Both the position numbers and the translations under genes were made by a program. A stretch of DNA of 64,000 nt. Source: Rhodosorus marinus CCMP1338. Lineage: Eukaryota > Plantae > Rhodophyta. Shown in pieces: positions 2,415 to 59,482 of this stretch. The stretch spans positions 1 through 64,000 of the forward strand of contig JAMWBK010000004.1 in NCBI GenBank assembly GCA_029953675.1, given 5' to 3'. The notes under the pieces are model-generated. The model was not told the DNA's origin. It was given only the letters and a program-made list of their open reading frames with translations, and did no database searches. Numbering within the stretch: position 1 is the stretch's first letter; each line of letters opens with the position of its first letter.

Positions 2415-2465
2415 ATTTTACCCCAGGCGAACCAAACCTACAAACTTAATTGCGAACCTTATCCA

Positions 2466-2515
2466 ATAACCCCAGATACCCCAGACTATCGTCATAACCC
2501 CAGACTAACGTAACC
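2466..2515 (+). repeat. Interstitial telomeric tract with variant units
   Basis: AACCCCAGATACCCCAGACTATCGTCATAACCCCAGACTAACGTAACC. Confidence 0.85.
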
Positions 2516-2916: not shown

Positions 2917-3029
2917 CCAGACTAACGTAACCGCGTACACTTTACTGAAGAACTCCCTATTGGAAACCCCAGACTAACCCCAGACTAACGTAACCCCCAA
3001 ACCTAGCATAACCCCAGACTAACGTAACC
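2917..3029 (+). repeat. Telomeric tracts enclosing a 32-bp family B 3'-terminal stub (2933-2964)
   Basis: GCGTACACTTTACTGAAGAACTCCCTATTGGA is identical to 3030-3061 and lies between repeat units. Confidence 0.85.
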
Positions 3030-6000: not shown

Positions 6001-6085
6001 TTCGACATGAGATGGTTCCAGCGTGTTTTCAGGTTATCGGGGACGAATTGGCGAGTAGGCGTCGGAGCCTGAGTCAGCTGCCACC
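3030..6085 (-). mobile_element. Family B, 5'-truncated copy with nearly complete RT-CCHC-RLE coding region and 3' UTR
   Basis: RT motifs LKLDLANAFNRIDR, GVQQGDPLGP and AIHDDLTLLG; knuckle CTICSQPHDAAGIQRLHHC; RLE RPDILA...VIDVKV...K. The 3' end is joined to GGTTACG. Confidence 0.92.
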
Positions 6086-7106: not shown

Positions 7107-7112
7107 TCCGCC
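6090..7112 (-). mobile_element. Family A fragment truncated at both ends
   Basis: 6090-6240 is identical to 2767-2916. Knuckle CTSCRRKHGPNGVQRFQHC and RPDIVA..AIDVTV. Telomeric tract 7113-7132 at the 5' junction. Confidence 0.88.
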
Positions 7113-7132
7113 CCCCCCAGACTAACGTAACC

Positions 7133-7295
7133 GTGAGCTTTATTGGGCAGTCGCCTAATGCGACGTAACACTAAGCCGATTGCTATCTAGGGAATCACTC
7201 ACAACAACCCCGCTACCGGGGTCTCATGCTACGTTCAAAAGAAAAAACAGGAACCAGTGGGTTCTCCAACTGGTCCGCACGTAGAGCGCCAAGCG
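7133..7295 (-). mobile_element. Family A short 3'-terminal copy
   Basis: Identical to 2516-2678; flanked by telomeric repeats. Confidence 0.88.
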
Positions 7296-7296
7296 T

Positions 7297-7343
7297 GTAA
7301 CCCCAGACTAACGTACACTTTACTGAAGAACCCCAGACTAACC
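7297..7343 (+). repeat. Telomeric units enclosing a ~20-bp family B 3' stub (7311-7330)
   Basis: TAACCCCAGACTA-ACGTACACTTTACTGAAGAA-CCCCAGACTAACC. Confidence 0.75.
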
Positions 7344-7371
7344 TCAGCCTCCGATTAAACCATTCGTTCGT

Positions 7372-8385
7372 AATGGTGACACCACCGTCACATCCAGCGC
7401 ATACCTTTGTTTGGTCCTCGGATGTCTAGCAACGATATCAGGTCTCAGTCCGTAGTTCTCGTTCTCGAAGTACCCCTCAGGTTCTTGCTCTACGTCCATG
7501 AAGTTCCATCGCCTTAGCCACCGTGCCAGCTCTCTGCAGATTTCGTCATGCCTACGTTGCCACAGTCCAGTTGATGTTGGGCAGTGATGCAACCGTTGTA
7601 CCCCAGTCCTTCCGTGTTTACTCCGGCAACTAGTGCACTTCTCGGTGGTCCGCAATCCCGGAATTGGCAGACCCAGCAGTTGTCGAACGTTTACCTGCAT
7701 CTCAACCGCACTCAATTTTTTCGGTGTCAGCGTTGGTATTTCACGTAGCCAGACTCCCGACCCGGATCCCGCGGCAGACCGTATTCGAGCTCGGTTTTCA
7801 GGGGAGATTCGTGGGTTGGTGACCAGCTTTTGGAATGCACAATGGTGTGCCTCTCGAGAGAGGGTTTGTTGTATTGAACCATTATTCCAAGCTGCAGTCT
7901 CGCCCGGTGCGCTTCGAAGAGATGTTTCTCGCGGTTGTTGCAGGGTAGTCAGTGCCAAGATCCGCGGCGGGGTTTCTGGTCCGAGCCTCCGTTGTATTGC
8001 TCGCGACGATGCACAGATCTGGTCCGCCAGCTGTGCAGTCGACCATCGTTGATCCATCGGCTCGTATGTGTCTGGTGAGCGTTCTGCCGTAACCTCCCGC
8101 TCTAGTTCAGTCAGGTATGGCCATTTATCTTCATTGTTCCGGAAGGTGTTTCTCCATGACGAGTAAAACGCGATGGGTTGGACGTGCTTTCGAGTAGCGA
8201 AACCCAAACCTCCCCAGCAGCAGGGCAGAGCGATTTGGTCCGAGATCAGCTCTGCGTACTCATCGTCCTCTACAGCTGTCGTAGCGAGGCTGCCGAAGAG
8301 AATTTCCAGGTGATATCTGGTCATCACGTCGGCCTCGCGTGCCAGATTTCTTCCAAACTCGTATGCGAGGCATCGTAGCACATAG
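7372..8385 (-). mobile_element. Family A2 fragment (post-RT region, CCHC, RLE start)
   Basis: Knuckle CTSCRSKHGRTGVQRLHHC and RPDIVARHP..ALDVTV. 8140-8385 matches 21110-21394 in reverse complement. Confidence 0.85.
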
Positions 8386-8524
8386 CACTGCCGGCGTGGA
8401 GACGGAATAGGTTCACCCCTCGGTGAAGTTGCTGCTTGCAAACCGTTTACTTGTCGATACTGTATTTAATTTGCACGGAATATTAACAAAGAACCCCACA
8501 AGACAACGGAAAATTCACAGAGGC

Positions 8525-9424
8525 CTATACACCCACAAGTTCCTGGGTCTTCTCCCACAGGATCTTGTTGTTGGTGGCAGTCACATCCTTGCTTGCGATT
8601 TTTCCTGCTCGTGTGTTTCCCCCCATGTTCATAATGTTCGGTCCATACATTTTTGAAGCTCCAGTAGCGAGCACCTCGTCCGATGTTGCTGCGTACAGGG
8701 TGGAAATTGCACCTTTGTCAGGAGACTGCATCATGAACTCCATCCCCCTCCCAATCCTTGTCAGCGCGCTCGTTTCTGCCTTTCTCAGCAAATCCGATTT
8801 TACAACACCGGGTTGTACCACAAACGACCTTACTCCGTCCGCCCGCACGCGATTATCAAGCTCTTGCGCGAACATAATGTTGTACAGCTTGCTAGTCCCA
8901 TACACATCAAGACCGCTCTTCTCGTAGCTCCTTCCCGCCACATCATCTAGGTCGGCCTTTGACACGTTCGCCTGGAGTGGCGACACTGTGACCACCCTTG
9001 CAGGAGCCGACTTCTTCAGCGTGTCTAACAGTAGAATCGTTAGTAGGTACGTCCCCACATGGTTTGTCCCTAGCGTTACTTCATAGCCATCCACGGTCTT
9101 GGAATGTGGGACCACCCCTGCACCGGCGTTGTTGACGAGAAGGTGAAGCGGCAGTCCTTTCTCGATAAACGCGTTTGCAAACGATCTTATGCTATCCGAA
9201 TTCGCTAAATCCAGCTGCATGAACTCCACCTTGGCATCAGGCTTCATCTTCTTGAGCTCCGCTACTGCATCAAGTCCCTTCTTCGGGGTTCGCGACGCGA
9301 TGATAACGTGTGCGTTGTTAAGCACGAGGTACTTTGCGGTAGAGAACCCAATGCCGATATTCGATCCGGTAACAATCGCGACTTTCCCGCTCTGATCCGG
9401 TATCTTGTTGACATCGAAACCCAT
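8525..9424 (-). CDS. Short-chain dehydrogenase/reductase (retinol dehydrogenase/WWOX-like), ~299 aa, apparently intronless
   Basis: TGSNIGIG Rossmann motif, LVNNAG, YGTSK catalytic motif, QLDLA. Likely start MGFDVNKIPDQSGK at 9424. Confidence 0.9.
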   Translation of the reverse strand: MGFDVNKIPDQSGKVAIVTGSNIGIGFSTAKYLVLNNAHVIIASRTPKKGLDAVAELKKMKPDAKVEFMQLDLANSDSIRSFANAFIEKGLPLHLLVNNAGAGVVPHSKTVDGYEVTLGTNHVGTYLLTILLLDTLKKSAPARVVTVSPLQANVSKADLDDVAGRSYEKSGLDVYGTSKLYNIMFAQELDNRVRADGVRSFVVQPGVVKSDLLRKAETSALTRIGRGMEFMMQSPDKGAISTLYAATSDEVLATGASKMYGPNIMNMGGNTRAGKIASKDVTATNNKILWEKTQELVGV

Positions 9425-9579
9425 CTTCTCCCATATATATATCTGAATTTCCCCAAAAACTTTAATACAGTTGATCCGTACTCTGTATTGCTCTTGTCCG
9501 ATACGTTGTCCCCTCGCCAAGCCCCGGAAAAGCGCTCCACATCTTGAGCATTTGCCTTCAGGTACATGTGCTCCATAGA

Positions 9580-10256
9580 CATGAAGATTGTTTTTGCTCT
9601 TTTTGTGCAAAAAGGCAAAAAAACAATCTTCATGTTACGATTGCCCTTCCAGTCCTGCAATTGTTGATTATGAAAGTAGCCTTCCTGTTCATCAGATGAT
9701 GAACGGGAAAGTAATGGAAATTCTTTTCATATATGGACACGATTTCTCCCTTGATATTCATTTAATCCTGTCGTTTTGTATGGGGTGTTCCGGATATGAG
9801 GAGCTTTCATAAAGCAACATTTGCAGGACCGGAAGCGCAATCAACATGAATGATTAGATTCAATAGGAACTGGGCAAATCAACGGTTTCACCAGTTCCCA
9901 GAACGGAAGCAGGAAGAGGAAAACAAATTCTGTCGTACCAGAAGATGTTGGTGAGTTCGATACTTCAGCACCATCTTGATCCTGATAAAAGAGCAAAAAC
10001 AATCTTCATGTTCGATTGCGCTTCCGGTCCTGCAATTGTTGATTATAGAAAGTAGCTTTCCTGCTCATCAGACGATGAGCGGGAAAAAGTAATGGAAATT
10101 CAGTACATACTATAGACACTATTTCTCCACTTGAGCATCTATTTCATTTAATCCTGTCGTTTTGTATAGGTTTTTCCGGAATGAGGAGCTTTTTCTCATA
10201 AAAGAAAACTAACATTTGCAGGACCGGACGCTGCAATCAACACTGAAGATTGTTTT
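9580..10256. repeat. Two diverged ~240-bp foldback units (9620-9855, 9990-10256) plus an upstream hairpin; MITE-like or structured ncRNA
   Basis: Terminal arms CTTCCRGTCCTGCAA / TTGCAGGACCGGA are complementary. Internal 12-13-bp hairpin with a compensatory change between the copies. Confidence 0.6.
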
Positions 10257-10669
10257 TCAGCATAAACAGGATTCTCTCAGGTCTACAAACCCTTCCTCAA
10301 GAAGCGCTTCCTATTTAATTTAATCCCACAGATGGAGTACGATCCCCATCACACAAAACAAAATGCAAGTGGAACGTTCCGAAGACAGATATCTCGTTTA
10401 CGAAGAAAAAGTTTCTCCAATACAAAAATACATGGAGCTATATGAATATGTTTCATTTTAGTAAATGCTTCTCTAAAAATCCGTCGGAGATCTTTCACTT
10501 CGCGACAATTTTTCGGACGGTGGGGTGGGGGATCGGTGGTAAAATTATTCACTTGCCGTAAACTCGAATTTAACACTTTCTTTTCCCTATATATATTGTA
10601 AGAATTGGGTATCCGTTCACGTAAGTGGGGTACAACATTTGCTTTGCTAATAGAATTAGAGGTTTAAAT

Positions 10670-11190
10670 GGCTGACTTTATTAGCATATAGCCTGAAGCG
10701 CTACGCAAGGCGTGAAAAGGGTCTAAGAACTAGCTAGGGAAGCGTGCAAACCCAGGCGCCTATGGCGCGCCTGAGCAAGCATGCTGCTCAAGTAGGGCCA
10801 CAGAGAGACGCTTAAACCCCGCAAAGTTCCAAGTAACCACAAGCATCAATCCGACTCTCACATCCCTGACAGAAAGACGGCCGGATTAGAGTTCCACGGA
10901 GCTTGTGGCAAACCGAGGTAGATCCGTGCGGCAGAGCGGAACTGGAAGGCATCGAGACGGTGACCCAGTGACGATGGCAGCGTGGTTAACCACAAGTGCG
11001 ATAGATGGCCTCCCATGCCGCGGAGGCGAGCAGTGGTGGTAGGCGGTGTGAGGGGAGAGTTGAGCAAGATTGGGTGAACGGCACTGTGCTGGCCCCAGGT
11101 GAGGCTATGTTTAATCACATCAGTGCGTGAGCTCCACAATCGGCTCAGACCCGGGTAATCTGCAACGGGTGACCCGGGATTAGCTTTATG
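10670..11190 (-). mobile_element. Degenerate family F (dispersed RLE element) 3' fragment with internal deletion
   Basis: Matches the 3' UTR and HSLTWGQHSA/GMGGHLSHLWLT region of 54407-56520. Confidence 0.8.
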
Positions 11191-11819
11191 GAATTAGAAG
11201 AAGGAATTAAGCTGACCTTGCTCAGACGACGAAAGTTCTGCTCTTTTGTAAGAAATCATATTTGTAATAAATTCCTTCATGCCGTTGCTATGAGCCGAAA
11301 TCTCTGTAGTTTTCTCCGATTTTCTTCCGAAATTGCAATTTGTATTTTTGTGAGTTTTCTGTCTACTGTGTGCTGGCGGGGCAAATGTATATGCTTTATT
11401 TTTCGGTAGGGTCAGTAGTGACACCTAGTACAGGAAATAAAGTTACATTGGTTCGTCGGTTGTGTCAGTTCGAACTCTTTTCGCATGGCCAATGACGACG
11501 TTCAGGAGAAGGTCCGAAGGCAAGGTCCTTGAAGCTTAAGTTTCCCGAGTTCATTGCATTCCATTAAAATGTAGGACTGTCCGTCATCGTCGATCAATTT
11601 CGAATAGGAAACAGCTTAGTAAGTGTGGTCACACGGCATCGCTTCACGATCCCCAGTACCTTTTCGATAGGGCAAATCATCCTCTCCAAGAGCGGAAGGT
11701 CTTCAAGGTTGACGGTGATGGATCTCCAGGTTAAATCTAAGATACGTGCATAGGATAGTTATATTCTACACCTGGCGATCATTTCCTCGAAGTGGGGCCG
11801 AGGTTCTCTGTGACTAGAA

Positions 11820-12112
11820 GCATCGTAGCACATAGCACTGCCGGCGTGGAGACGGAACAGGTTCACCCCTCGGTGAAGTTGCTGCTTGCAAACCGTTTAC
11901 TTGTCGATACTGTATTTAATTTGCACGGAATATTAACAAAGAACCCCACAAGACAACGGAAAATTCACAGAGGCCTATACACCCACAAGTTCCTGGGTCT
12001 TCTCCCACAGGATCTTGTTGTTGAGTGGCAGTCACATCCTTGCTTGCGATCTTTCCTGCTCGTGTGTTTCCCATGTTCATAATGTTCGGTCCATACATTT
12101 TTGAAGCTCCAG
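11820..12112 (-). pseudogene. Partial duplicate of the SDR 3' end and downstream flank, cut off by telomeric repeats
   Basis: Near-identical to 8370-8664 with small indels; ends at CCAG|GGGTTACG. Confidence 0.85.
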
Positions 12113-12134
12113 GGGTTACGTTAGTCTGGGGTTA
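12112..12134. repeat. G-strand telomeric tract followed by an inverted C-strand unit (fold-back)
   Basis: GGGGTTACGTTAGTCTGGGG-TTA-CCCCAGACTA. Confidence 0.75.
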
Positions 12135-13833
12135 CCCCAGACTATACGCACCACGACTGGACACGCCGAGGGTGATTAACCTGGATATCCCTGAGATTCA
12201 AGTGACTCGCGCCGGGACTACGTTGTACTCCATACCAATTGGAACTCGGGTGTTTGCGGAAGAAGAATGTCGAGCTATTCAAACGCGACATGCGAACCTG
12301 GTCAAATCGATTCAGCGACTCCCCGATGCTGAACTCCAAGTCAAGCTGGCCCTCTTTCGGTACTGCGCAGGCACAAGGCTCGATTATCATACACGTGGGC
12401 TGGCGTACCCCCTTGGACGTACCGTTGCCCGCGAGGCGGACGCGATCACCCTCTCGGAGCTTGAAGGCTTGTGTGGAGGCCTATGTCAACACCAGGATAT
12501 CACCGCACGTAAGGCTGCAGCGGTTGAGAAACAGATTCGACTCCCATGTCGATGGGGAGGACTTGGCTTTGCCACGCGCACGAGAATTCAACCAGTTGCC
12601 TTCCATGCAGGGTGGAAACAAAGCCTGTAAGAGAACACCACTGAATCACGCTACCTCGAACGGCTTTCCCAGGAGTGTATTGCGGCAGCACAAGGAGAAT
12701 CGCTGCGACGGGTGCGACTTGGATGGACAACTGATGGAACTGATGGACTTGCTTGGCAACTGGTGGAGGCAAGTCGCGCAATTAGACGACGTTTGCCAGC
12801 GACGACCAGTGCACGGATCCAGAGGCTGGCCGATTGGCAACCGCTGGAGGACTCGGCGGAAGGCACAGCGGAAGACACAGGAGGTACCCAAAGGTTTGAC
12901 GGTCCGATCCAAAAAACGCTCTCTCGAGAGTGTCACCGACAAGCCTTTGAGGAGCTTACTGGAGATTCAACACTGGACGACCTAGACCGGGCGAGGATCC
13001 GATCGGCATCTGGAACGGGGTGCGGGGTCTGGCTACGCGACTGTCCTAGTACAGGGCCGCGGCAGTTGACGCGAAATGAGATGTTGTGGAGCATGCGGAT
13101 GCTTCTAGGGCTACCACTGCAAGGACTAGGGCGGTCACACACATGCACGGTCTGCGAGCAACCACACGATGTGCGTGGGATCCAGCGGCTGCACCACTGC
13201 AGGACCTCATCAGGGATGCGAACCAAGAGGCACGACGAGCTAAAGGTAGAACTGAGTCGATGGTTACACCTATGGAGTTTCACGGAGATACAAGTAGAGC
13301 CTGAGGGGTTCTTTGCCGGGTCTGGAATTCGCCCAGACATCGTTGCACGACACCCGACGAGCGGATGCGTGTACGTGGTGGATGTGATGGTGACATCGCC
13401 ACTTCAAAGGCATCAGTTGAGACATACGAGCTGGAACTGCGGGTATGCTGCGAAACAGGCCGAACAAGCGAAGGCGTTGCATTATAAGGAAGTGCTGAGG
13501 GGGCAAAACCGAGATGTGGTTCTTGTGCCGTTCATTTTTGAGACATTTGGTCGAATGGGCCAGGCAAGCCTTGAATTTCTTCGAACGGCGAGCGCGCACC
13601 TGCATGATCGTGACTCCCATCTATCGTCGGTGAGGGGTCAACTAAACCGCATTTTGTGGCAGCACAATGCTGCGCTTGTTGAACACGCGATCGAGAAAGA
13701 TCGCGCAGATAGACCGATATTTCCCCTAAGTAGAATTTAGATGAGACTCCTGGAGAGGGAGTCCAGGTTTGGTTAGTGCGTACGTAGTGATCGTGTGATG
13801 CGCTACATTAGGTAGCTGCCCAATAAAGGCTAC
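12135..13833 (+). mobile_element. Family C, 5'-truncated copy with one premature stop (TAA at 12628) and intact 3' UTR
   Basis: ORFs 12025..12630 and 12712..13740; knuckle CTVCEQPHDVRGIQRLHHC; IRPDIVARHP..VVDVMV. The 3' end AATAAAGGCTAC is joined to GGGGTTACG. Inverted near-identical copy at 25170-26675. Confidence 0.9.
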
Positions 13834-13857
13834 GGGGTTACGTTAGTCTGGGGTTAC

Positions 13858-14290
13858 CGGCTCTGACCCGCGCCCTTCGCAGTAGTCGACTCCTGCCGTT
13901 CACGAAGCCTAACAAGGGTTCAGTGCCGCAGGAGCATCCCGGAGTTCGCCCTATCGGAGTACCAGAAGTTTTGCGCAAGGTAGCAACGCAATGGACTCTT
14001 CACGCGGTTATGGACAGGGTGCGTGAGCTCCTGGGTGCCCATACAACTGGGTATTGGAGTAAGTGGCGGGTGCGAACGCTCCCTTCACGCGATCCAGGCC
14101 CATTTGTCATGCGAACCCGATTCGGTGGTCCTTCGCCTAGACCTTGAGAATGCCTTTAATCGCATCGACCGACGCCTTGCCAAGCAACTGGTGGACGAAC
14201 ACTTGCCGGAGCTCGCACCAGTGTATAGACTTGGATATGGAAGCGACAACGCGGACTCACCGACGCTCTGTGGCTGGCGAGCCCGTGATC
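13858..14290 (+). mobile_element. Internal RT fragment of a telomeric-type element following a telomeric tract (13834-13857)
   Basis: RPIGVPEVLRK, GVSGGCERSLHAIQAHL and LRLDLENAFNRIDR, with one frameshift. Confidence 0.8.
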
Positions 14291-14773
14291 CACGAGCCCC
14301 AAGCTGGAGGCAGGCTGCGCCACCAGTAGTTGAGTCTGGGACCGGCACAAAAGTGGGAAAGCAAGCAGGCCGATTCCAGTATGCTGTCGGGTAGGTGCTC
14401 AATGGCGTCGGTAAGTTGCTTGTGCCGTGCCAAAACTCGCTCGCAGGAAGCTTGGACAAAGTTGTCAGTCCCCAATCCGACGCCGTGGTGTTCGAACCCT
14501 TCACGTTCGCTGATTAGTCGCAGAGTGGGTGGCAGAGAGGCCAGCGACACGTCCCTCGGGGGGAGAAAGCGACATTTTTCTGTTTCCACAGTCAAAACCG
14601 ACGCGACGTGCAATCGCTTCGATCGCGGTCAGCCCCCGAGCCAGGGTGTCAGGGTGCCCAGCAATGTTACGTCATCGTGGTACGCGCAGATTCGAAGATC
14701 CGAGACCTCAGTCGAAAGACGTAAAAGTACGAGCTGTAGGGCACAGGCATGAAGAAGAGGTCCGCAAGGGTCG
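14290..14773 (-). mobile_element. Family F RT fragment (YHDD region)
   Basis: Near-identical to 55835-56335. Confidence 0.85.
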
Positions 14774-14925
14774 AGCTTAACTAGCTCTTCTATCCCTTGT
14801 CCTGTTCGAAATACTGCTGGAACTCTCAGGTTTAACGATAAGCGGAGGGATAGGGGCTAAAGCTTTCTAGACGCTTCTATAGATGCTTCACCATCTCCAC
14901 AGAACTGCTTCCCCATCTTGTCACC

Positions 14926-15016
14926 ATAGACTTTATTAGGCAGCTACCTACTGCAGGGCAATACCACTACTCTGTGTCGCGCTAAACTCTCACTTAGACC
15001 CCCTGTCCAGGGTCTC
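14926..15016 (-). mobile_element. Solo 3' UTR (~90 bp) of a C'-like telomeric element at a non-telomeric site
   Basis: Reverse complement GAGACCCTGGACAGGGGGTCTAAGTGAG...CTGCAGTAGGTAGCTGCCTAATAAAGTCTAT matches 18984-19074. Confidence 0.75.
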
Positions 15017-15269
15017 CGGTACAAAAACATTTTCACCCAAAAATATCTCCAGGATAGAATACAACCTGGACACGTTCAGCAAGAGTGGCACTCACGCACA
15101 CTAGACCCTTACTAAATATGACAGCTCCAAAGTTGCTCCCTGAAGACCCACTCTGGAACCTGCCCAGGTAAGAAGCTGAGATAACCTCCATTGAAGAACC
15201 TTTGAGCTTCCAAGCGCTAATTCTGTTCTCATCACCAGCACCAATGAAAATGTTTTTCTCGCTACGCCG

Positions 15270-17700
15270 TACCCGAATGAGTCTATTTACAATCAGAAAG
15301 GGCGGTTTTTGCTCCTCCTTTTGTTTTCTATTGACATTAAGCAGACGCGCCTTCTTTTGGGTTCATGGACTCTGTTGGTTCTCGCTGGCTTCGGGAGTTG
15401 TTCCGCGAACGCCCTGACCGTCTTCAATCGTTGTTTACCCGCTTAAGTTTCCTGCTGTGGCGCATGAATGCCGCTTTGATGTTGGAGGCGCGAGTACTTC
15501 GCCGCGCTTAGTCTTTTTTTCCCCTCGGGGTTTTTTTTTTCAGCCTCCGATTAAACCATTCGTTCGTTCTTCCAGAGATGTACCTCGTTCCGCCAATAGC
15601 AAATGACCTGAGTGATATACTGGTTAATAATAAGAAGATTCTGCGGCGTTCAAACGCCCAAATTTTCTAGCGTGATTCCAATGTCCGACTTGTCAGATAT
15701 CCCTCGTCCAACGCATCCCAGTCTTCGGAAAGCATCGCTTTACTTTAACCCCATACCACGTATCCTCGCAAAGATCGGCGACCTTTTGAGCGAGTATTGA
15801 AAAGCAAGATTGCTGAGCATCTTTTTTTTTATCGCTATTCCCTACACAAATGAGTCTATTTACCATCAGAAAGTGCGTTTAGGCAGCGTGCAGGTTGTAG
15901 TTACTTTGGTCATTGCTATTGGCGGAACGGGGTATATTTCTCCGTCAAGGAAGCACCGACTGGTTTCTGAGTAAGACGTATGAACACTGGGTGCTGGAGG
16001 TGAGCGATCTTAACGCACGTAAAAGCGTAGTTTTTTGCCACTCATTTTATTTTCTATTGAAATTAAGTAGGTGCGTCTTTCAGAAATGTACCTCGTTCCG
16101 CCAATAGCAAATGACCTGAGGGACTGTAGGCTCCACGCTTCGGAGACTTTCATACTAGTTAATAATAAAGAGATTCTACGGCGTCCAAACGCGCTAATTT
16201 TCTACCGTGACTCGAAGTCTATTAATAGACTTATTTGTCCGTGGCCACGCTAGAAACAGAAATTTAGTGGATGGAAGTAAAACCACCAGTTTTTTTGTTT
16301 GGGGCGGGGAGGGATGAACAGATTTGCTTTAGTATGAGGTACTTTTCCTTTTTCCTAGCGAACTCCTTATAGTTCCCGTATGTGATGACTGATTATGCGT
16401 TTCTTAACGATTAAACCATTCGTTCTTAACGCGAGCCTAAATGCCTCAGCGTTTTCTCATAATCACATCAGCTGATCTCAGCTTTATTTTTGCACTTTGT
16501 GTTGCAGTTTTTACAAAACTTCAGTAAACCCTATGCCCCAAGGAGCACTCAGCATACGATGGCAGAAGGCATAGTGACGCAAGGCTATGGATAAGTTCAT
16601 TAAAAACAATACATCGCGCCAGGAAATTGAGTAATTTGTATAATCTGGGACAGAAAAAAAAGCCCCGCGGTAAAAAAAGACTAGATCCCGTGAAGATTGC
16701 CAGGATCTAACAGCGAAACAGCGACACAGCAGGAAACTTCGACGGGTGAACAAAACGAGGGGAAACGGTCACGGCGTTCCCGGAACAACTCCCGAATCCA
16801 ACGAGAACCAGCGGAATCAATAAACCCAAAACATTCAATGACCAAAACAGGTATCAGGGCATGAGGAAAAGCCGAAGCTCGTATTCCAGCGGAAGATCAG
16901 GCCGCAGCATATTTCACTTCTTTGCGACGTCTCATCGTTGTCGCGGTGGTTCCACTGCGCTCTCCCGCAGCCGGTAAATAACGACTAGCCTGACGATTCG
17001 AGAATTAGAGCAAATCAGAAACTCCAAGTGGGAGAACCAAACTCTCCACCCGGTGAGCACTGATGGTTACAGTCAGGAGTTTTTGGCAGCGCGGAGGTTG
17101 CAGTCACTCAGGTTATTGCAGGAAACTTGGACGGGTAAACAACGAGGAGACACGGTCACGGCACTCGTGGAACAAATCCCGAATCCAACGAGAACCAACG
17201 GAGTTAATAAACCCAAAACACTCAATGACCAAAACAGGTATCAAGGTATGATGAAAAGCCGAAGCTCGTATTCCAGCGGAAGATCAGGCCCCCGCATATT
17301 TCACTTCTTTGCGACGTCTCATCGTTGCCGCGGTAGTTCCACTGCGCTCTCCCGCAGACGGTAAATAACCACTAGCCTCATGATTCGAGAATTACTCGCA
17401 TTTCTGAACAAATCAGAAACTCCAAATGCGAGACCAAACTCTCCACCCGGTGAGCACTGATGGTTATAGTCAATAGATTTTGACCGCGTGGAGGTTGTAG
17501 TCACTCAGGTCATTGTTATTGACGGAACGAGGTACACATAGTGCTCTCGCCATCTTGCAGGAATGCCCGCTCACAACGTCCACGGTCTTTGCGAGGATAT
17601 GTGATCTGGGGTTTTTTGTTTTTGTTATAAGTAAAGCGATGCTTGCTGAGGATTGGGATGTGTTGGTCGAGGGATATGTGACAAGTCGTACATTGCCAGA
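15270..17700. repeat. Mosaic of degenerate direct and inverted low-copy repeats
   Basis: 16740-17070 resembles 17130-17470 (direct). 15560-15620 resembles 16080-16120 and, inverted, 17500-17540. 15680-15790 is inverted at 17570-17700. 15480-15567 is inverted at 50335-50425. Confidence 0.65.
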
Positions 17701-17805
17701 AGCGGGGATTGTGATAAGAGCTCAGGTTGAATTTCGACGGGAGTAAACGAGCTTGTAGAAGGTCGGCCGAAGTTGTCTAATCCTTGCAGAGAGAGCGGAT
17801 TGAAC

Positions 17806-18291
17806 ATGATGAAGTTGAGCGCATTAATTCTTGTCGCCGTGCTAGGGTTCACGATGGCGGTTCCGCTGATCGAGAAAGTTCATCTTGCGGAGAAAAATCA
17901 GGCGGGCGTTCAGGTTGCCAGTCACAAATTCGTTCCGAGTGCTGGCCCGGCAACGGTCGTTCAGGGTGCGGAGCCGGCAACGGTCGTTCAGGGTACGGAG
18001 CCGGCAACGGTCGTTCAGGGTGCGGAGCCAGCAACGGTCGTTCAGGGTGCGGAGCCGGCAACGGTCGTTCAGGGTGCGGAGCCGGCAACGGTCGTTCAGG
18101 GTGCGGAGCCGGCAACGGTCGTTCAGGGTGCGGAGCCGGCAACGGTCGTTCAGGGTGCGGAGCCGGCAACGGTCGTTCAGAATGCGGAGCCGGGAGCTGC
18201 TCTCAGCACTACGATAACCATCTACTTTCCTAATAACAGCGCCCCTTCTGACCCTTTTTTATTTTTCGAAATTAGCATGAGACCCCGGTAG
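17806..18291 (+). CDS. Secreted protein with 9 x PATVVQGAE repeats; C-terminus supplied by a retroelement 3' end
   Basis: Signal-peptide-like MMKLSALILVAVLGFTMA. Ends ...FEISMRPR-stop, the ORF2 terminus shared with families A/E. Confidence 0.6.
   Translation: MMKLSALILVAVLGFTMAVPLIEKVHLAEKNQAGVQVASHKFVPSAGPATVVQGAEPATVVQGTEPATVVQGAEPATVVQGAEPATVVQGAEPATVVQGAEPATVVQGAEPATVVQGAEPATVVQNAEPGAALSTTITIYFPNNSAPSDPFLFFEISMRPR
17947..18189 (+). repeat. 27-bp coding minisatellite, 9 copies (CCGGCAACGGTCGTTCAGGGTGCGGAG)
   Basis: Direct inspection. Confidence 0.95.
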
Positions 18292-18371
18292 CGGGGTTAG
18301 CGTAGGTTTTTCCCTAGATAGTACTAGCACTAGTGATACGCTGCAGTAGGCAGCTGCCCAGTAAATTTTAC
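18245..18371 (+). mobile_element. Short 3'-terminal copy (A/E-type) followed by variant telomere unit GGTTATGTCAGTCTGGGG
   Basis: Contains ATGAGACCCCGGTAGCGGGGT, CCCTAGAT and GCTGC-AGTAG-GCAGC-TGCCC-AGTAAATTTTAC. The 5' boundary is approximate. Confidence 0.75.
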
Positions 18372-18389
18372 GGTTATGTCAGTCTGGGG

Positions 18390-19074
18390 TCTGCGAGCAA
18401 CCACACGATGTGCGTGGGATCCAGCGGCTGCACCACTGCAGGACGTCATCGGGGATGCGAACAAAGAGGCACGATGAGCTGAAAGTCGAACTGAGTCGAT
18501 GGCTACACTTATGCAGTTTCACAGAGATAGTAGTAGAGCCTCAGGGGTTCTTTGCTGGGTGCGGAATTCGACCCGATATGTATCTAGCACGGTACCCGAC
18601 GAGCGGTTGCGTGTACGTGGTGGACGTGATGGTAACATCGCCACTTCAAAGGCATCAGTTGAGACATACGAGCTGGAGTTGCGGGCATGCCGCGAAGCAA
18701 GCAGGACAAGCGAAGGCGTTGCATTATAAGGAAGTGATGACGGTGGAAAACCGAGACGTGGTTTTTGTGCCGTTCATTTTTGAAACTTTTGGTCGAATGG
18801 GCCAGGCAAGCCTTGAATTTCTTCGCATAGGGACGGCGCATCTGCATGATCGTGACTCCCATCTGTCGTCGGTGAGGGGTCAATTAAACCGGATCCTGTG
18901 GCAGCATAATGCTAGGCTAGTTGAGCATGCGATCGAGAAAGATCGCGCAGATAGAACAATGTTTCCCTTGAGTAGAACTAGATGAGACCCCTGGCGAGGG
19001 GGTCTAAGTGAGTTTAGAGCGAACATAGAGTAGTGGTGTTGCGCTGCGGTAGGTAGCTGCCGAATAAAGGCTAC
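18390..19074 (+). mobile_element. Family C' (diverged C subfamily), 5'-truncated, RLE and 3' UTR
   Basis: ORF 18410..18985 is homologous to the C copies. The 3' end AATAAAGGCTAC is joined to GGGGTTAC. Confidence 0.88.
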
Positions 19075-19082
19075 GGGGTTAC

Positions 19083-19217
19083 GGAGAATCCGCTGGTGCC
19101 TGTTTTTTCTTTTGAACGTAGCATGAGACCCCGGTAGCGGGGTTCCAGTAAGTTTCCCCCTAGATAGGATTAGACGTAGTGTTGCGCTGCAGTAGGCAGC
19201 TGCCCAGTAAAGCTTAC
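19083..19217 (+). mobile_element. Short 3'-terminal copy (A/E-type)
   Basis: Encodes ENPLVPVFSFERSMRPR-stop. The 3' end AGTAAAGCTTAC is joined to GGTTACGT. Confidence 0.8.
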
Positions 19218-19225
19218 GGTTACGT

Positions 19226-20942
19226 ACGCTCAGCGCACTGTCCAACATGCTCCCGCTCGAGAATCAGCTGCACAATCCGACCAGCAGGACGATGCCCGGG
19301 CGCACAGTCCCAGCAGGCCGCGCTGCGACAGCTGCAGGCCACAGTGGGAGGGTCCTCCTGGGGACCTGAGACCAAACCGGTACTGGCGACCCTGAGGAAT
19401 GTAAGACCGCCACGGATGGACGAGGTAGCCCCATCGCACTTCACGACGGTTCTTTGCAGAGTCTTGGGGATTCCGAGCTCTAATGTGGCGCACGTGGACT
19501 TCATCGCTTCCCACGCGTGCTTACTATGCCATCCGGACGCGATTCCGATTCTGCAGAGCGCCATCTCTAGGGGCGTTTTCAGGACAGGGATTTTCGGATC
19601 GTTGACCCAGAGACACCCCGATCGGCAAGTGACTCTCTACACTGCCGGCCAGGCACTGGATACAGACAACCTGTTGGGCTATAACGAACGTCAGCTTATT
19701 GCCCCAGCGAACATCGGGCCCCAGACCCTGAAACGGGCAATTGAACAGACTATCCGGATTCGCGCGAGGCTTCGCAGGAGGCAACTCTCATTCAACACTC
19801 TCGCAGCGATACACGAGTACCTGGAGAGCAGACTAGGAGCCCTACAAGCCAGACAACGTACTCCAACGGTACCCGGGGAGAGTGCGGAACCCCCAGCGTC
19901 TGCAGCCGCCACGAACGTAGACTCTGAAGCCTCGTCCCTTACAGGGGACGCACAGGCAGCCCGTGGGACAGTCACGCTCCGGGTAGTCCCCTAGCCTAAG
20001 TACCTGAAGAAGATGCACCCGAGGATAACCCCTCACACAGAGCTCCCCTACAACCTGCCCGAGCCTCCTCAACACAAGCGGTCGCGAGTATCCACTGATG
20101 GCACAGGCCAGGATACCGAGATGACTCCGGCAGCCGTAGAGGTTCCACAGGGCAACACTGCACCACAGACCGACCACACTGCCACCCCTCACGCGATGGA
20201 CACATAGGACAGCCAGGAAGCACCTACGCAATAATGCCCAGACGACAATGGGGAATCAAACGAAGACGCGACGAGCCTCTGTTCTTCTCGGAGCGACAAG
20301 CCTGGATCAAACGTTGGACCGACTTCGTTGACGAGGTTACGACAGGAGGAAGGCACTTGACGCGCCTAACACACTGCCCGGTACCCACCCGGCGCTTTGT
20401 GCCCCGTGCCCACGTCAATACCTGAGCCACCATCTTCGCGCAGCTCTTGAGATTTCCATGGACACAGCTGCACCCGCCAACGCCAGTCTGCTTCTTGTCG
20501 GACCTCCAGACCTGGTGCTAGGACGTTCTGCACTTGACATCGGTATTCAGGTCACACATGTGCTTGAAGGAGAATTCCATACTGTCTGGACCGCGCTTGA
20601 AGACAGGGCGTCCCTACTGCAGCAGAATACTGCCCCACCGGGAACCGAAGCGACTCGCCGCCAAGCTTTAGGACGCAAGAAACAAGCCCTGAAACTGGCA
20701 CATCTCGGTCGCCTCTCGGACGCTGCTCGTCGACTACAGGCAACGGAAATGGCTCCTTTCACCGAGACTACCTGGCGCCAACTCCAAGGAATCTTCCGAG
20801 AACCTGCGGCAGGTGACTTACCAGACGAGTTGGTGGAGGCCCTGGAATCACTGCACAACACTAACAACACCACTCTTAAGCGCCGATGGGATCCCAGGAA
20901 AGCCGCTGATGAGGGCCTCCTGTCGATTGTGGCACGTCTTCC
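19226..20942 (+). mobile_element. Family E copy 2: partial ORF1 and ORF2 N-terminus, degraded, 3'-truncated by telomeric tract 20943-20981
   Basis: Homologous to 424-1800. TAATG stop/start at 20232-20236; internal stops and frameshifts. Confidence 0.85.
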
Positions 20943-20981
20943 GGGGTTACGTTAGTCTGGGGTTACGTTAGTCTGGGGTTA

Positions 20982-21394
20982 TATATCGAACAGGAGTGCC
21001 GGGGGTTGCAAAATAAGCATGAGAAACTCTTTGCGGAAATCGCCAAGCTCCCACAACCGGAGCTTACGACGCAAATTGCCCTCTTCAGGTTTTGTGCAGA
21101 AACGCGACTATACTATGTGCTACGATGCCTCGCATACGAGTTTGGAAGAAATCTGGCACGCGAGGCCGACGTGATGACCAGATATCACCTGGAAATTCTA
21201 TTCGGAGGCCTCGCTACGACAGCTGTAGAGGACGATGAGTACGCAGAGCTGATCTCGGACCAAATCGCTCTGCCCTGCCGCTGGGGAGGTTTGGGTTTCG
21301 CTACTCGAAAGCGCGTCCAACCCATCGCGTTTTACTCGTCATGGAGAAACACCTTCCGGAACAATGAAAATGAATGGCCATACCTGACTGAACT
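20982..21394 (+). mobile_element. Family A2 fragment interrupted by a family F 3' end
   Basis: QNKHEKLF..ALFRFCAETRL..LPCRWGGLGFATR; matches 8140-8385 in reverse complement. Confidence 0.85.
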
Positions 21395-21570
21395 GGACTG
21401 GCCTTTACTAGCATAGCCTGAAGCGCTACGCAAGGCGTGAAGATGAACTAATAACTAGGGAGGGAAGTATGCAACCCCAGGCGCCGATGGCGCGCCTCGG
21501 AAAGCATCTCGCTGGAATATCGCCAAAGGGAGACACTTAAACGCCTCAAGAGCGCCAAATATTCAGTAGG
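21395..21570 (-). mobile_element. Family F 3' end, broken and capped by telomeric tract 21569-21600
   Basis: Near-identical to 54407-54580; junction CAGTAGG|GGTTACG. Confidence 0.85.
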
Positions 21571-21673
21571 GGTTACGTTAGTCTGGGGTTAGTCTGGGGT
21601 GAGGGCTTTCGGACTTTGAAATTTAAGTTCATTGACGCGAGCTTGGAGTGTTTTACAAGGAGTTGATTTGGAA

Positions 21674-23260
21674 ATGACCCTTCCCGAGGCCCTGCCTCCG
21701 GACGGAAGTGGCATAAACCCCCTACAATCGGACGAACCTATGCACGATGCTTCTACCCAAAATTTTACCGGGCGAGAACCTGATCCTGCTGCTACTCTCC
21801 CAACTGCACCTGCTACTGCGGCGCCGGACACCAGCACTCACCATCTGAAGATCTCAATGAGCTGTGGACCGCTGCAACTACACCTCGACGTTCCCCAAGC
21901 CAAAGCCACGAAGTACAACGCCCTGATGCTGAAATTCATGGAACTTGCTGCACAAGCCCATGCCAGTGGCAACGAGGCTCAGCTCCTTCACACTCTGACT
22001 ACAACGCCCCAACGACCTACCCAGACACCGCGCCCCCTACATGTCTACGAACCGGCATCCTACGCCAGCACAGCAGCCCGCCCCAGATCTCCCGACGCGC
22101 GCGATCTCGATGCTGATGCATATCCCGATCTCGCAGCAGCCAATGACCGCACACGCCCGACACCTCGACCTAGTAGCCGGCCAATGAGTTGGTCGACACG
22201 TGTCCGAGGTAACCAGACCCCGGCAGCCGCGAATCGATCATTTTTCGCGAGCATTCAAGGTCTGGAGTTCGAGAGCAAGGAAGATATTGACGCATTTGTG
22301 CTACTCAATGCACGACCTCGCGACGGAACCAAGAGCAAGGCCCACCACGCCTGGGATATCGAGCGCCTTGCCGGCCTGCAGAAGAACACGCTGCTGCAAC
22401 TCGATTATTTCGATCACCACGTGCACATCATTGCACACCGGACTGCCCTACCACGGGTCCGCGACGCAGTGAACGCAGGCGCCTTCTACCCCACTACCGG
22501 CAACCTCCACCCAGCCGAACGCATTCAGGCAGTCAAGCTCTCTGCGAGCTCCATGGACTACCTGAGTATGCGCGAGAAACTCCGCCATCGGCCCGAGGAC
22601 TACCCGCGAGTGGCCCTGATCCACAACCTGCGGCGCTATCGCCGTATCCAGCGGATCGTTGAGCGCCGTAGGGGCCTCTCCCCCAACGCTCGGGAGGCCC
22701 TGCTCGGCCACGTTCGGGCAGAACTCAACCGAACTCTGGCCAGTATCCATGCCCACGCCCAGAAGACACCTGACACCGGCACCAGGGTACCTTTCGAGGA
22801 CCCTGAACTACCCCAGCTCTCGACCACCACCAACCGACAGGTAGCACGGGCTCCGGCGCGTGTAAGCACTGCACACAAACCACCAGTGGTAGCCGGGGAG
22901 AGCGCGGAACCCCCCGCGTCTGCAGCCGCATCACAAGCAGACCACCAAGCCTCGACCCCTAATGGGGCCGTACAGGCAGACCGTGAGGCAGTCGCCGCTT
23001 CGGGTGATTCCAGCGCGACACCTCCACTACCACCGGAGGACGCTGCAGAGGACAACCCGCACGCGGAGCTCCTCTCTAACCTCCCGGAGCCGCCCCAACA
23101 GAAACGCACGCGAACGACTGCAGCTGGCACCAGCCCCGACTTGGAGATGACCCCAGCCAACCACGAGGCGGCTACAACCACTGCTGCCGGACTCACTGGC
23201 TACTCTTCAAGCTCCAATGCCATGGACCTACAAGCCTGCCCCCCCGCCTCCCAACAGTGA
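21674..23260 (+). CDS. Intact ORF1 of family D (~528 aa); element spans 21601-23262 and is cut immediately after the ORF2 ATG
   Basis: Open frame MTLPEALPPDG...PPASQQ. The 3' part is identical (reverse complement) to 29915-30149, which runs into the intact ORF2. Homologous to family B ORF1. Confidence 0.82.
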   Translation: MTLPEALPPDGSGINPLQSDEPMHDASTQNFTGREPDPAATLPTAPATAAPDTSTHHLKISMSCGPLQLHLDVPQAKATKYNALMLKFMELAAQAHASGNEAQLLHTLTTTPQRPTQTPRPLHVYEPASYASTAARPRSPDARDLDADAYPDLAAANDRTRPTPRPSSRPMSWSTRVRGNQTPAAANRSFFASIQGLEFESKEDIDAFVLLNARPRDGTKSKAHHAWDIERLAGLQKNTLLQLDYFDHHVHIIAHRTALPRVRDAVNAGAFYPTTGNLHPAERIQAVKLSASSMDYLSMREKLRHRPEDYPRVALIHNLRRYRRIQRIVERRRGLSPNAREALLGHVRAELNRTLASIHAHAQKTPDTGTRVPFEDPELPQLSTTTNRQVARAPARVSTAHKPPVVAGESAEPPASAAASQADHQASTPNGAVQADREAVAASGDSSATPPLPPEDAAEDNPHAELLSNLPEPPQQKRTRTTAAGTSPDLEMTPANHEAATTTAAGLTGYSSSSNAMDLQACPPASQQ

Positions 23261-23262
23261 TG

Positions 23263-23301
23263 TCTGGGGTTACGTTAGTCTGGGGTTACGTTAGTCTGGG
23301 G
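23263..23301 (-). repeat. G-strand telomeric tract at the orientation switch of the array
   Basis: TCTGGGGTTACGTTAGTCTGGGGTTACGTTAGTCTGGGG, with a plus-strand element to the left and a minus-strand element to the right. Confidence 0.9.
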
Positions 23302-25098
23302 GCGAGTAGGCGTCGGAGCCTGAGTCAGCTGCCACCAGCGGTTGCCATTATCGGTTACGTTGAGAATGAAGTCGTGCAGAGACGAGAGCCAGGCGTTCGA
23401 GTCGGTCTCGAAGAGTGACTGCGTCGAAGTGGGAGGTCGTTGGCGACGAGCACGAGCACGGCGGGATGAGCGAGAGCGGTTTGGAGTATATTCGTCTGAG
23501 GAGCTGCTCATGATTGAGTCGACGAGAGGGAGTCGGGCGTGAGGTCGTCGACGGCGTTGGCAGGCTTAGGGCGCTTAGTGGGTGGAGCCACTTGTCTCTT
23601 GTCTTGGGCCGTCGAAAGTCCTTGCATCGGCTCTGCAGGGGTCACTGGTTGATCGCTAGTGGTGGAGGGGTCAGGCTCCGAGTCTAGTGGATCACGGGCT
23701 GTCGCGGCAGGCGTCTCAGGCGTGTTGTCCTCCCGAGCGGCTGGGACTTGGGCAGAATCAGCGCTATGCGTAGTCGCTGCGAGGGGTTCCGCACTCTCCC
23801 TCTCCAGTGCCGCCGGTTGAGGGTCAGCTACCCGGGTTCGGTCCAGAGAGCGTGGCTCTCTGCGCTCGGTTGTTGTCGAGTGCTCTGGAAGCTCAGGGTC
23901 GAAGAATGGCACGCGCAGGCAACTGTCGGGTGCTCGTTGAGCGTGAGCGTGGAGGCTGGCCAGGGTGCGATCGAGCTCGGCCCTGACGTGGCCCAGGAGT
24001 GCCTCTCGGTTGTTGGGTGGGAGACTCCTGCGATTTGTAACAATCCGCTGGATCCGTCGGTAGCGGAGCAGGTTGTGGATCAGTGCAGCGCGGGGATAGT
24101 CTGCCGTTTGGTGACGGAGCTTTTCCCTCATGCTCAGGTATTCGTGTGACGTTGGAGAGAGCTTGACAGCTTGGATACGTTGATCAGGAGGCAGGTGTGC
24201 TCCTCTGGTGGGTTCGAAGGCCCCTGCGTTGGTAGCGTCGCGGAGTAGTTGGAAGGCGGTATGGTGAGCGATGACGTGTACATGATGATCAAAGTAGTCC
24301 AGCTGGAGCAGCGAATTTTTCTGAAGGCCGGCTAGGCGCTCGATATCCCAAGCATGATGGGCCTTGCTTCTGGTGGAGTCCCGAGGTCGAGCATTGAGTA
24401 GCACAAATGCATCAACGTCCTTCTGGCTCTAGTACTGCAGCCCATGAATGCTCGCGAAAAACGAGCGATTGGCAGCTGCTGGGGTCTGGTTGGCGCGGAC
24501 ACGTGTCGTCCAGCTCATTGGTTGAGGTTGAGCTCGAGTCCTTGTCCGTGCTTGCTCATTGGCCGTTGCGAGATCTGGGAATGCATTGGAATCGAGATCA
24601 CGTGTCTCGGGAGATCGCGGGCGGGCTGCTGCAGTGGCGTAGTTTGCTGGTTCGTAGACAGGGAGGGGGCGTTGTGCCCTCGGGGCAGCTTGTTGTGGCG
24701 TCGTAGTCAGATTGTGAAGGAGTTGAGCCTCGGTGCCATTGGCGTGTGCCTGGGCTAAGAGACCCATAAACCGCAGCATAAGCCCATTGTAGAGCGGGGT
24801 CTTATGCTTGGGCGCGTCGAGATACAGCTTCAGCGCTCCGCAGCTCAGGTCAATTGCCAAGGGAGTAGGTACGTCGTTTTCAAGTGCAGATGCAGTTGTA
24901 GGCTCAGAAACAGGTACTGGCAGAGGCTCGGGTCCGTCTGCTCTCAGGCTAACGGCCGGGAGGTCTTCCATCGTTGCGTCTGTGCAAAAGCCCCCCCCAT
25001 CCGGAGGCACGGGCTCGAGAGTAGTCATATCACTCGATAAGCGTTCGTAGAAAGAATGAAAGTGTAACTTTATCACCACGATAAACTCCAAAGTCCAA
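23302..25098 (-). mobile_element. Family B 5' half: 5' end, ORF1 (25028-23508, one in-frame TAG at 24429) and ORF2 N-terminus (from 23511), 3'-truncated
   Basis: The ORF2 start ...NRWWQLTQAPTPTR overlaps the start of the B copy at 6050-6085. ATGA overlap at 23508-23511. Telomeric tract 25108-25169 upstream. Confidence 0.87.
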
Positions 25099-25169
25099 CC
25101 CCAAATGCCCCAGACTAACCCCAGACTAACGTAACCCCAGACTAACGTAACCCAGACTAACGTAACCCC

Positions 25170-26675: not shown

Positions 26676-26695
26676 GTACCCCAGACTAACGTAAC

Positions 26696-30149: not shown

Positions 30150-30183
30150 CCCCCAGACTAACGTAACCCCAGACTAACGTAAC

Positions 30184-31680: not shown

Positions 31681-31684
31681 AACC

Positions 31685-59475: not shown

Positions 59476-59482
59476 GCAGGGA

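Follow-up and report, generated by a model that had tools for sequence, protein, structure and literature searches.

Organisation of the left chromosome end

The window analysed here comprises the first 64 kb of the 3.19-Mb contig JAMWBK010000004.1 of the unicellular red alga Rhodosorus marinus CCMP1338 (assembly GCA_029953675.1). The contig starts with a telomere, followed by arrays of a telomere-targeted retrotransposon of the non-LTR type (LTR, long terminal repeat). Within these arrays lies a patch of about 16 kb (7344-23301) which, judging from the orientation of its repeats and elements, is most likely chromosome-end material that was built at a rightward-facing end and is now inverted in a leftward-facing end (Table 1).

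The plus strand of the terminal tract is the C strand, with the unit CTAACGTAACCCCAGA, and the G strand has the unit GGGGTTACGTTAGTCT, which at 16 nt is long for a telomere unit. Allowing up to two mismatches, GGGGTTACGTTAGTCT occurs 42 times in the window, against 0.05 expected occurrences. A full-text literature search for the 16-nt unit and a scan of metagenome contigs for the telomere dimer gave no match.

A telomere-targeted retrotransposon family

An earlier reading of the sequence had distinguished A and B elements; these are open reading frames (ORFs) ORF2 (1042 aa) and ORF1 (542 aa) of a single non-LTR retrotransposon. In 30150-26795 (-), the last 77 codons of ORF1 lie directly upstream of the 1042-aa ORF2, the stop and start codons overlapping as TGATG. 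The only Pfam domain matched by ORF2 is the reverse transcriptase domain RVT_1. Its C-terminus carries a CCHC motif and an RPD...DVTV region that aligns to residues 941-1036 of the R2 protein, for which structures have been solved. The protein thus combines a reverse transcriptase with a downstream restriction-like endonuclease and has no apurinic/apyrimidinic (AP) endonuclease, and the full ORF2 protein shows weak similarity to R2 (E 4.5e-5). The window contains at least five subfamilies; the names used here include alpha, beta, gamma, delta, epsilon and E'.

An exhaustive HMMER search gave 87 proteins at E <1e-30, the best relatives being unnamed MMETSP transcripts of marine eukaryotes and small contigs, with 45-60% identity. 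A Pyropia vietnamensis protein is a 33% identical relative. One weak match came from a word-indexed search and none from a scan of metagenome contigs for ORF2 relatives, and exact-protein look-ups with ORF1, ORF2 and the dehydrogenase described below found no recorded protein.

Complete 3' ends of the elements read ...AATAAAG(N5-7)AC and are followed by GGTTACGTTAGTCTGGGG, giving the junction form AC/GGTTACG (the slash marks the joint). Full-length 5' ends are preceded by variant 11-nt repeats, GGGGTTAGTCTGGGG, and upstream of 5'-truncated copies the telomere tract always ends within GGGG(TTACG). The elements insert only into telomere repeats and in a single orientation, with the G strand as their sense strand in every case and the 3' end directed towards the chromosome end, so that element orientation records telomere polarity. 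At positions 424, 6093, 7343, 20943, 21570, 23262 and 47704, a 3'-truncated copy is followed directly by a fresh telomere tract, the mark of terminal erosion plus telomerase capping. We take it as established from these junctions that chromosome ends here were repeatedly eroded into their last element and re-capped by telomerase.

Polarity domains

Telomere tracts were located over the whole window by an exact-phase scan and element fragments by tblastn with the element ORFs. All tracts are in minus polarity at 1-7342, in plus polarity at 12112-23301 and again in minus polarity from 25116 to 32581, with a single exception, an inverted seed of 11 nt at 12134-12144. The element fragments follow the same pattern, with 8/8 minus in 424-8382, 8/8 plus in 12145-23261 and 5/5 minus in 23302-32571, i.e., all 21 fragments agree with the polarity of their domain. 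Furthermore, copies are flanked by telomere repeats in fixed orientation: each of the 19 interstitial tracts agrees in polarity with the adjoining element fragment. Overall, three polarity domains result: minus (1-8382), plus (12112-23301) and minus again (23302-32581).

The two polarity flips proposed in the sequence-only reading are borne out by both scans, far beyond chance. They are real, yet not the only ones: deeper in the window there are a plus relic (45012-47998) and a minus relic (53622-53789), which brings the count to at least six flips over 54 kb. The plus domain proposed for 12112-23301 holds for the polarity of its tracts and elements; it is not continuous, being interrupted at 14284-18244 by 4 kb of non-array DNA in which minus relics lie. 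The DNA that precedes it was described as host-like, in agreement with its 46% GC and dehydrogenase ORF, but the boundary lies at 8382/8383 rather than at 8385/8386.

Table 1. Features of the window. Strand is that of the element, ORF or G-strand repeat.
Feature	Position	Strand	Remarks
Terminal telomere tract	1-423	-	26.8 copies (about 27) of the 16-nt unit; left contig end
Young leftward array	424-7342	-	seven short minus-polarity tracts; all junctions canonical
Beta	424-2466	-	3'-truncated in ORF2, capped by the terminal tract
Epsilon 3' part	2518-2916	-	
Gamma	3032-6082	-	
Epsilon ORF2 fragment	6093-7106	-	
Two 3'-untranslated region (UTR) snippets	within 424-7342	-	
Repeat R remnant	7344-7371		28 nt, capped at 7343 by tract 7329-7342
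Relic E'	7372-8382	-	ORF2 codons ~593-930; subfamily otherwise only at 20982-21394
Host-like segment H1	8383-12111		
Short-chain dehydrogenase ORF	8525-9424	-	intact, 299 aa; in H1
C-family retrotransposon fragment	10673-11187	-	in H1 spacer
Direct duplicate of 8367-8664	11817-12112		16 nt of E', gene 3' flank and last 140 nt of gene
G-strand seed	12112 onward	+	24 nt, then 11-nt inverted snippet 12134-12144
Array a	12145-14283	+	
Delta ORF2 fragment and 3' end	12145-13833	+	one premature stop
Telomere tract	13834-13857	+	in array a
Alpha-like reverse transcriptase (RT) fragment	13858-14283	+	cut at ORF2 codon ~422
Non-array insert (H2 region)	14284-18244		
C-family RT fragment	14284-14814	-	borders the 14283/14284 junction
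Retrotransposon 3'-UTR relic	14924-15016	-	inside plus block
Repeat R copies	15480-15568, 50338-50423		dispersed repeat; 28-nt remnant at 7344-7371
Repeat-protein ORF	17806-18244	+	signal-peptide-like start, nine 9-aa units (AEPATVVQG)
Arrays b and c	18245-23261	+	begin with a 3'-UTR fragment
Degenerate tract	18366-18390	+	
Delta-like fragment	18391-19074	+	followed by a 3'-UTR fragment
Beta	19225-20942	+	frameshifted, cut at ORF2 codon 238, capped by tract 20943-20981
E'-type fragment	20982-21394	+	
C-family 3' end	21395-21570	-	capped by tract 21569-21600
ORF1 (example)	21585-23261	+	
Alpha	21601-23261	+	full-length 5' end, intact ORF1, cut at ORF2 start codon
40-nt G-strand tract	23262-23301	+	2.5 units, ends ...TCTGGGG; right edge is the 23301/23302 junction
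Gamma	23302-25107	-	ORF1-like frame (split in two) and ORF2 codons 1-68
Proximal leftward array	25108-32581	-	
Delta	25170-26677	-	
Alpha	26696-30150	-	intact 1042-aa ORF2
ORF2 (example)	26795-29920	-	
Alpha'	30184-31678	-	
Gamma	31679-32571	-	
Ty3/gypsy-type LTR retroelement	32566-36500		RVT_1, RNase H, integrase SH3; immediately inside array/host boundary 32581
Telomere seed on host DNA	32569-32581	-	13 nt
Further C-family copies	35207-35411, 43228-44438, 45012-47706, 54409-56405, 59479-61473 and others		
Telomere-like string CGTTAGTCTGGGGTT	37469-37483		15 nt, within 3' region of a C-family copy
923-aa ORF	39729-42500		unrelated ORF; recorded once, at these coordinates of the contig
Deeper plus relic	45012-47998	+	C-family 5' part, G-strand seed 47704-47720, gamma-like full-length 5' end
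Deeper minus relic	53622-53789	-	

Junctions of the inverted patch

Four G-strand cappings lie within the block (12112, 20943, 21569 and 23262). They require that a free, rightward-facing end existed over several cycles. Such an end could have come about in two ways: by growth of the block on an end whose centromere was to its left, with fusion or capture then bringing it here upside down, or by growth here in normal orientation and subsequent inversion. At 12112, G-strand repeats were added directly to a broken copy of the dehydrogenase gene, a healed break that faces right. The 5' junction of the delta element at this place (12112-12144) is a small palindrome, TAGTCTGGGGT / T / ACCCCAGACTA, that includes the 11-nt inverted telomere snippet, perhaps the result of snap-back or a template switch during insertion. 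Growth of the plus block in place from a small inverted seed such as this one (12134-12144) was considered and rejected, because it explains neither the host segments nor the telomerase-capped 3' truncations.

At the right border, 23301/23302, the 40-nt G-strand tract that caps an alpha element cut at the start codon of ORF2 meets an antisense gamma element. As the sequence-only reading had it, the G-strand tract abuts a 3'-truncated element of opposite orientation: gamma 23302-25107 stops 68 codons into ORF2, and an intact gamma copy shows the sequence that would be expected to continue across the junction. Microhomology is at most 1 nt and the gamma side has no C-strand repeats at the joint. 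The junction is thus not one where two opposite tracts meet; C-strand repeats do not occur nearer than 1.8 kb, at 25108, where the canonical 5' end of this gamma copy is preceded by the variant repeat GGGGTTAGTCTGGGG (25108-25122). It is nevertheless flanked by telomere-associated sequence of opposite polarity, plus at 18245-23261 versus minus at 23302-32581. Whereas a natural end has about 420 nt of repeats, the tract at the junction has 40 nt, so the joint is no ligation of a native telomere end. It has the appearance of a telomere that had become critically short and was end-joined to a resected end.

The two elements at this joint (21585-23261 and 23302-25107) are both cut just after ORF1, at codon 1 and codon 68 of ORF2, respectively. 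Their arrangement is a quasi-mirror, formed by two different subfamilies with 75% identity.

On the left side of the patch, two junctions have to be distinguished. At 8382/8383, the E' relic, at about codon 593 of ORF2, meets the 3' flank of the dehydrogenase gene with no telomere seed. Both the element side and the flank of this joint are duplicated at 11817, with two substitutions and two indels in 296 nt (about 1.4% including indels). The joint must predate that copy, which bears the seed of the plus array, and is probably older. A template switch from element RNA onto dehydrogenase mRNA was rejected as its origin, since an A tract is missing, the spacer of 2.4 kb cannot be mRNA, and the only AGTAAA signal ends 57 nt before the junction. 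Further left, the 28 nt that precede tract 7329-7342 are an exact copy of the end of the dispersed repeat R. This remnant adjoins E', indicating that E' had been interrupted by R, and a later break inside R appears to have been capped at 7343. By its structure this is the only canonical break-plus-telomerase junction on that side.

These observations bear on the proposal of the sequence-only reading that a fused chromosome broke near 8386 as the last event and entered a breakage-fusion-bridge cycle. The site is not upheld, since 8382/8383 has no telomere seed and is duplicated at 11817, whereas the canonical cap is at 7343. The order fails as well: a duplicate of that joint beside the seed at 12112 makes it older. 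For a breakage-fusion-bridge cycle, the broken end healed by a new telomere is found, in the R remnant capped by tract 7329-7342, but there is no mirror-image duplication at either junction. Among the inverted matches in the window, no mirror-image duplication adjoins 23301. Matches across this position are at the family level, scattered and non-collinear (coordinate sums 53177, 46705, 44242 and 38994), and the sole near-mirror pair is the pair of different subfamilies mentioned above. The lack of mirror-symmetric matches also rules out a palindrome formed by sister-chromatid fold-back.

Two further junctions lie inside the patch. At 14283/14284, the alpha-like RT fragment meets a C-family fragment in minus orientation, with 1-3 nt of microhomology. 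At about 18244/18245, the repeat-protein ORF is cut off by a 5'-truncated element fragment, with no telomere seed.

A proposed head-to-head joining, breakage and re-capping

The reading that we tentatively prefer, with somewhat less than even confidence, is that two chromosome ends joined head to head, broke, and were re-capped at 7343. What the block shows is a rightward-facing end where a copy of the dehydrogenase gene broke and was capped at 12112, with elements added, eroded and re-capped afterwards at 20943, 21569 and 23262. This end would have shrunk to the 40-nt tract. This chromosome's own left end would have lost its cap and been resected 68 codons into ORF2 of its last element. End-joining of these two uncapped ends would have produced the 23301/23302 junction. 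The partner was perhaps another chromosome, which would have made a dicentric, or the opposite arm of the same one, which would have made a ring, or else a fragment that had broken off. The joined molecule would then have broken about 16 kb away, within repeat R, and telomerase would have capped the break at 7343, from where the young array 1-7342 grew. The joints at 8382/8383, 14283/14284 and ~18244/18245 would be older end-joining scars that were carried in, or separate captures. On this reading, the patch is a scar without function that documents telomere failure and repair.

Apparent ages agree with a core that is old and is flanked on either side by younger arrays. The core includes the duplicate of the 8382/8383 joint (about 1.4% divergence), the delta element 12145-13833, which has a premature stop and differs by 1.6% from its sister copy, the degenerate tract 18366-18390 and a frameshifted beta element. 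In the arrays 1-7342 and 23302-32581, sister copies differ by 0-1.1%.

Compared with the original proposal, this reading retains the rightward end, the joint at a short tract and the leftward re-capping; the break at 8386 and the breakage-fusion-bridge cycle are given up, and repeated events are suggested in place of a single one.

Several points weigh against joining of two ends. The tract at 23262-23301 is ordinary in length (40 nt, compared to 9-65 nt in interstitial tracts) and its end phase, ...TCTGGGG, is common to 6 of the 21 listed tracts. The 8382/8383 joint would be left unaccounted for, and the donor end must already have carried an inverted relic. Since the block is a patchwork, what is described as one event may be several. 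The age arguments use a small number of differences, in an assembly of Nanopore data with short-read polishing (PMC10250338), and assume that elements did not insert into interstitial seeds. The evidence is from one assembly and covers this window, outside which any donor locus or reciprocal product would lie; only the original sequencing reads can confirm the inverted patch. Finally, re-inverting 8383-23301 brings the 5'-truncated E' (8382) next to the 40-nt tract, which is a canonical junction of a tract with a 5'-truncated element and fits an inversion in place.

Such a local inversion requires no second chromosome. The whole array, captured host segments included, would have grown at this leftward end and 8383-23301 would have been flipped by two breaks, one at an interstitial tract that was fragile or cut by the element endonuclease, and the other beside the dehydrogenase flank. 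Not only does the tract match ordinary interstitial tracts in its length and end phase, but re-inversion also makes the E'-subfamily copies 7372-8382 and 20982-21394 near neighbours. The other restored junction, however, between the dehydrogenase flank and gamma cut at codon 68, is not continuous. In addition, an inversion would make the 8382/8383 joint the newest one, yet its duplicate at 11817 differs at 4 places in 296 nt, while the flanking arrays, which must then be older or contemporary, are 99-100% identical to sister copies. Inverted repeats at both breakpoints are absent among the inverted matches in the window. The sole inverted pair near a breakpoint is 8104-8385 and 21113-21394 (97.5% identity), of which the second copy is 1.9 kb inside the block. 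A staggered-break inversion via this 282-bp pair would make an ORF2 fragment contiguous again, but 21395-23301 would stay in plus polarity, and this variant was rejected for that reason. We consider a local inversion unlikely, though it is a serious contender.

The patchwork structure may also be explained by stepwise accretion, in which the end failed repeatedly and each time captured a loose telomeric or subtelomeric piece in random orientation, with no single 16-kb donor. The pieces 18245-23301, 14284-18244 and 7344-14283 would have been acquired in this order before re-capping. This agrees with the three junctions of non-canonical form that the block has within it or at its edge (23301/23302, ~18244/18245 and 14283/14284, the last with its short microhomology), with the minus relic within the plus block, and with the additional flips deeper in the window. 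On the other hand, at least three captures would each have had to bring plus-polarity arrays, and the cappings at 20943, 21569 and 23262 still require that each piece had long been free as a rightward end elsewhere. As a full account of the patch we regard accretion as quite improbable. End capture as such seems to recur in the window, as suggested by the junctions at ~18244/18245 and 14283/14284 and the deeper relics, and the patchwork block together with at least six flips in 54 kb suggests repeated events instead of one.

An assembly artefact would require that two to three chromosome ends, or one of the contigs of <40 kb, were brought together by chimeric Nanopore reads or by NextDenovo taking a wrong path. 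The assembly was made from Nanopore reads only (6-kb size selection) using NextDenovo 2.5 with Pilon polishing by short reads, and consists of 13 large contigs, of which eight ends have no telomere, and four contigs of <40 kb (PMC10250338). The region is also highly repetitive. Read inward, all ends have the same polarity, which misassembly via shared repeats would therefore keep, and only chimeric reads could generate flips. The flips occur at unique junctions and not within shared repeats, and the 8382/8383 joint is corroborated by its internal duplicate at 11817. The 40-nt tract at 23301, shorter than a natural end, also speaks against an artefact. An artefact is therefore very unlikely in our view.

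The probability that these four explanations leave belongs to other readings, among which is a former linear molecule with two telomeres. The 4.8-kb core 7344-12111, of which both ends are telomerase-capped, has arrays running outward from it in opposite polarity, and 1-23301 has the architecture of a complete linear molecule of this type. We give only a very slight chance to the core once having been a small, independently maintained linear replicon. It could have consisted of captured genes and telomeric retrotransposons and later have fused to this end, and the four contigs of <40 kb might be such molecules.

For three subfamilies, a 3'-truncated piece and a 5'-truncated piece elsewhere overlap with 99-100% identity: 23302-23334 with 6050-6082 (gamma, 33 nt), 6090-6239 with 2767-2916 (150 nt) and 23028-23262 with 30149-29915 (235 nt). 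The last 33 nt of gamma 23302-25107 are the first 33 nt of the gamma 3' part, and the two pieces combined would give one full-length 4.8-kb element. Insertion of 6083-23301 into a single gamma element with a 33-bp target duplication was rejected; the match is probably coincidental, because the two other subfamilies show comparable overlaps, of 150 and 235 nt, with the copies concerned being independent. The overlaps are probably a coincidence arising from few active master copies.

Host-like segments and other sequences

Segment 8383-12111 has 46% GC, compared to 56-57% in the arrays. A homolog search with its dehydrogenase gave Rhodosorus marinus transcripts as best matches (75-85% identity) and no paralog from the same genome. 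The 14284-18244 region consists, beyond the 3'-UTR relic, of low-GC, repeat-rich DNA. The 9-aa units of its truncated repeat-protein ORF are encoded by a 27-bp tandem repeat (17903-18193), and the ORF has no homologs in a protein database search. Pieces of repeat R at 15353-15568 in this region are shared with 50338-51194 of the same chromosome end; the two R ends are 40 nt apart in the former and 680 nt apart in the latter, and the former may have arisen by deletion from a small mobile element.

The C family is a second, more distant family with reverse transcriptase plus endonuclease, scattered in both orientations. At their 3' ends, the copies have short tails in which AGTAAAGNCC-like units are repeated in tandem. 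The copies 54409-56405 and 59479-61473, 2 kb each and 98.9% identical, form an inverted pair around 3 kb. At the place of the telomere-like string 37469-37483, other C-family copies have unrelated sequence. A 1332-aa 'ORF' at 3108-7106 (-) is not one gene but a chance in-frame read-through that joins the 3'-truncated epsilon ORF2, a 10-nt telomere seed (6083-6092) and the 5'-truncated gamma ORF2. Rfam and tRNA scans of the window found nothing.

Comparison with known systems

Telomere-specific non-LTR elements are known from Bombyx mori (SART1, TRAS1) and Drosophila (HeT-A, TART), and have a strict orientation relative to the telomere strand. In SART1, the sense strand is followed by G-strand repeats. 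The R. marinus elements share this strict orientation, and likewise their arrays record the polarity of ends. Whereas SART1 and TRAS1 carry AP-type endonucleases, and HeT-A and TART derive from lineages with such enzymes, the elements described here have a C-terminal CCHC motif and a PD..D restriction-like endonuclease. In this they resemble R2 and other elements with restriction-like endonucleases, where RVT_1 precedes a CCHC/PD..D endonuclease region and insertion is sequence-specific. Unlike R2, they target the telomere repeat and not rDNA, and have a separate 542-aa ORF1.

The junction at 23301/23302 can be compared with human 2q13, where head-to-head interstitial telomere arrays were left by a chromosome-end fusion. 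In both cases, telomere-associated sequence of opposite polarity meets internally and is read as the fossil of an end-to-end join. Here, repeats are present on one side only (2.5 units), with a resected element on the other side, and the join is 23 kb from a live telomere, as would follow if the fused partner was broken off and the break re-capped.

A close parallel in behaviour is provided by the MoTeR arrays of Pyricularia (Magnaporthe) oryzae. There too, telomere-targeted non-LTR elements form terminal arrays with short tracts between them, truncated copies are capped by telomerase, and failed ends capture other sequence, leaving relics and interstitial tracts of which some are inverted relative to the nearby telomere (PMC7367193, PMC8381367). 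MoTeR elements have their 5' ends nearest the chromosome end, whereas the 3' ends are distal in R. marinus, which further differs in its two ORFs, red algal host and 16-nt telomere unit. We therefore call the elements MoTeR-like in behaviour without classifying them as MoTeR, the likeness being one of organisation. According to the MoTeR review, breakage-fusion-bridge events had been neither detected nor explored in that system (PMC7367193, PMC8381367). Unlike in the MoTeR case, R. marinus keeps a 16-kb inverted array together with its junctions.

The structure is thus of a known kind, an internalised telomere with telomeric-retrotransposon relics of failed-end repair, and adds a new lineage in which an example is well preserved. 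For chromosome-end assemblies of this type, validation at the level of reads is needed. If reads confirm it, the patch would be a junction-resolved natural scar, left in a free-living red alga by the failure of telomeres and the joining of ends, and readable because strictly oriented telomeric retrotransposons record which way the old ends pointed. The at least six flips in 54 kb suggest that failure, capture and re-capping are a routine engine of subtelomere shuffling here, much as has been proposed for MoTeR-bearing blast fungi, with the opposite element orientation and in a distant lineage.

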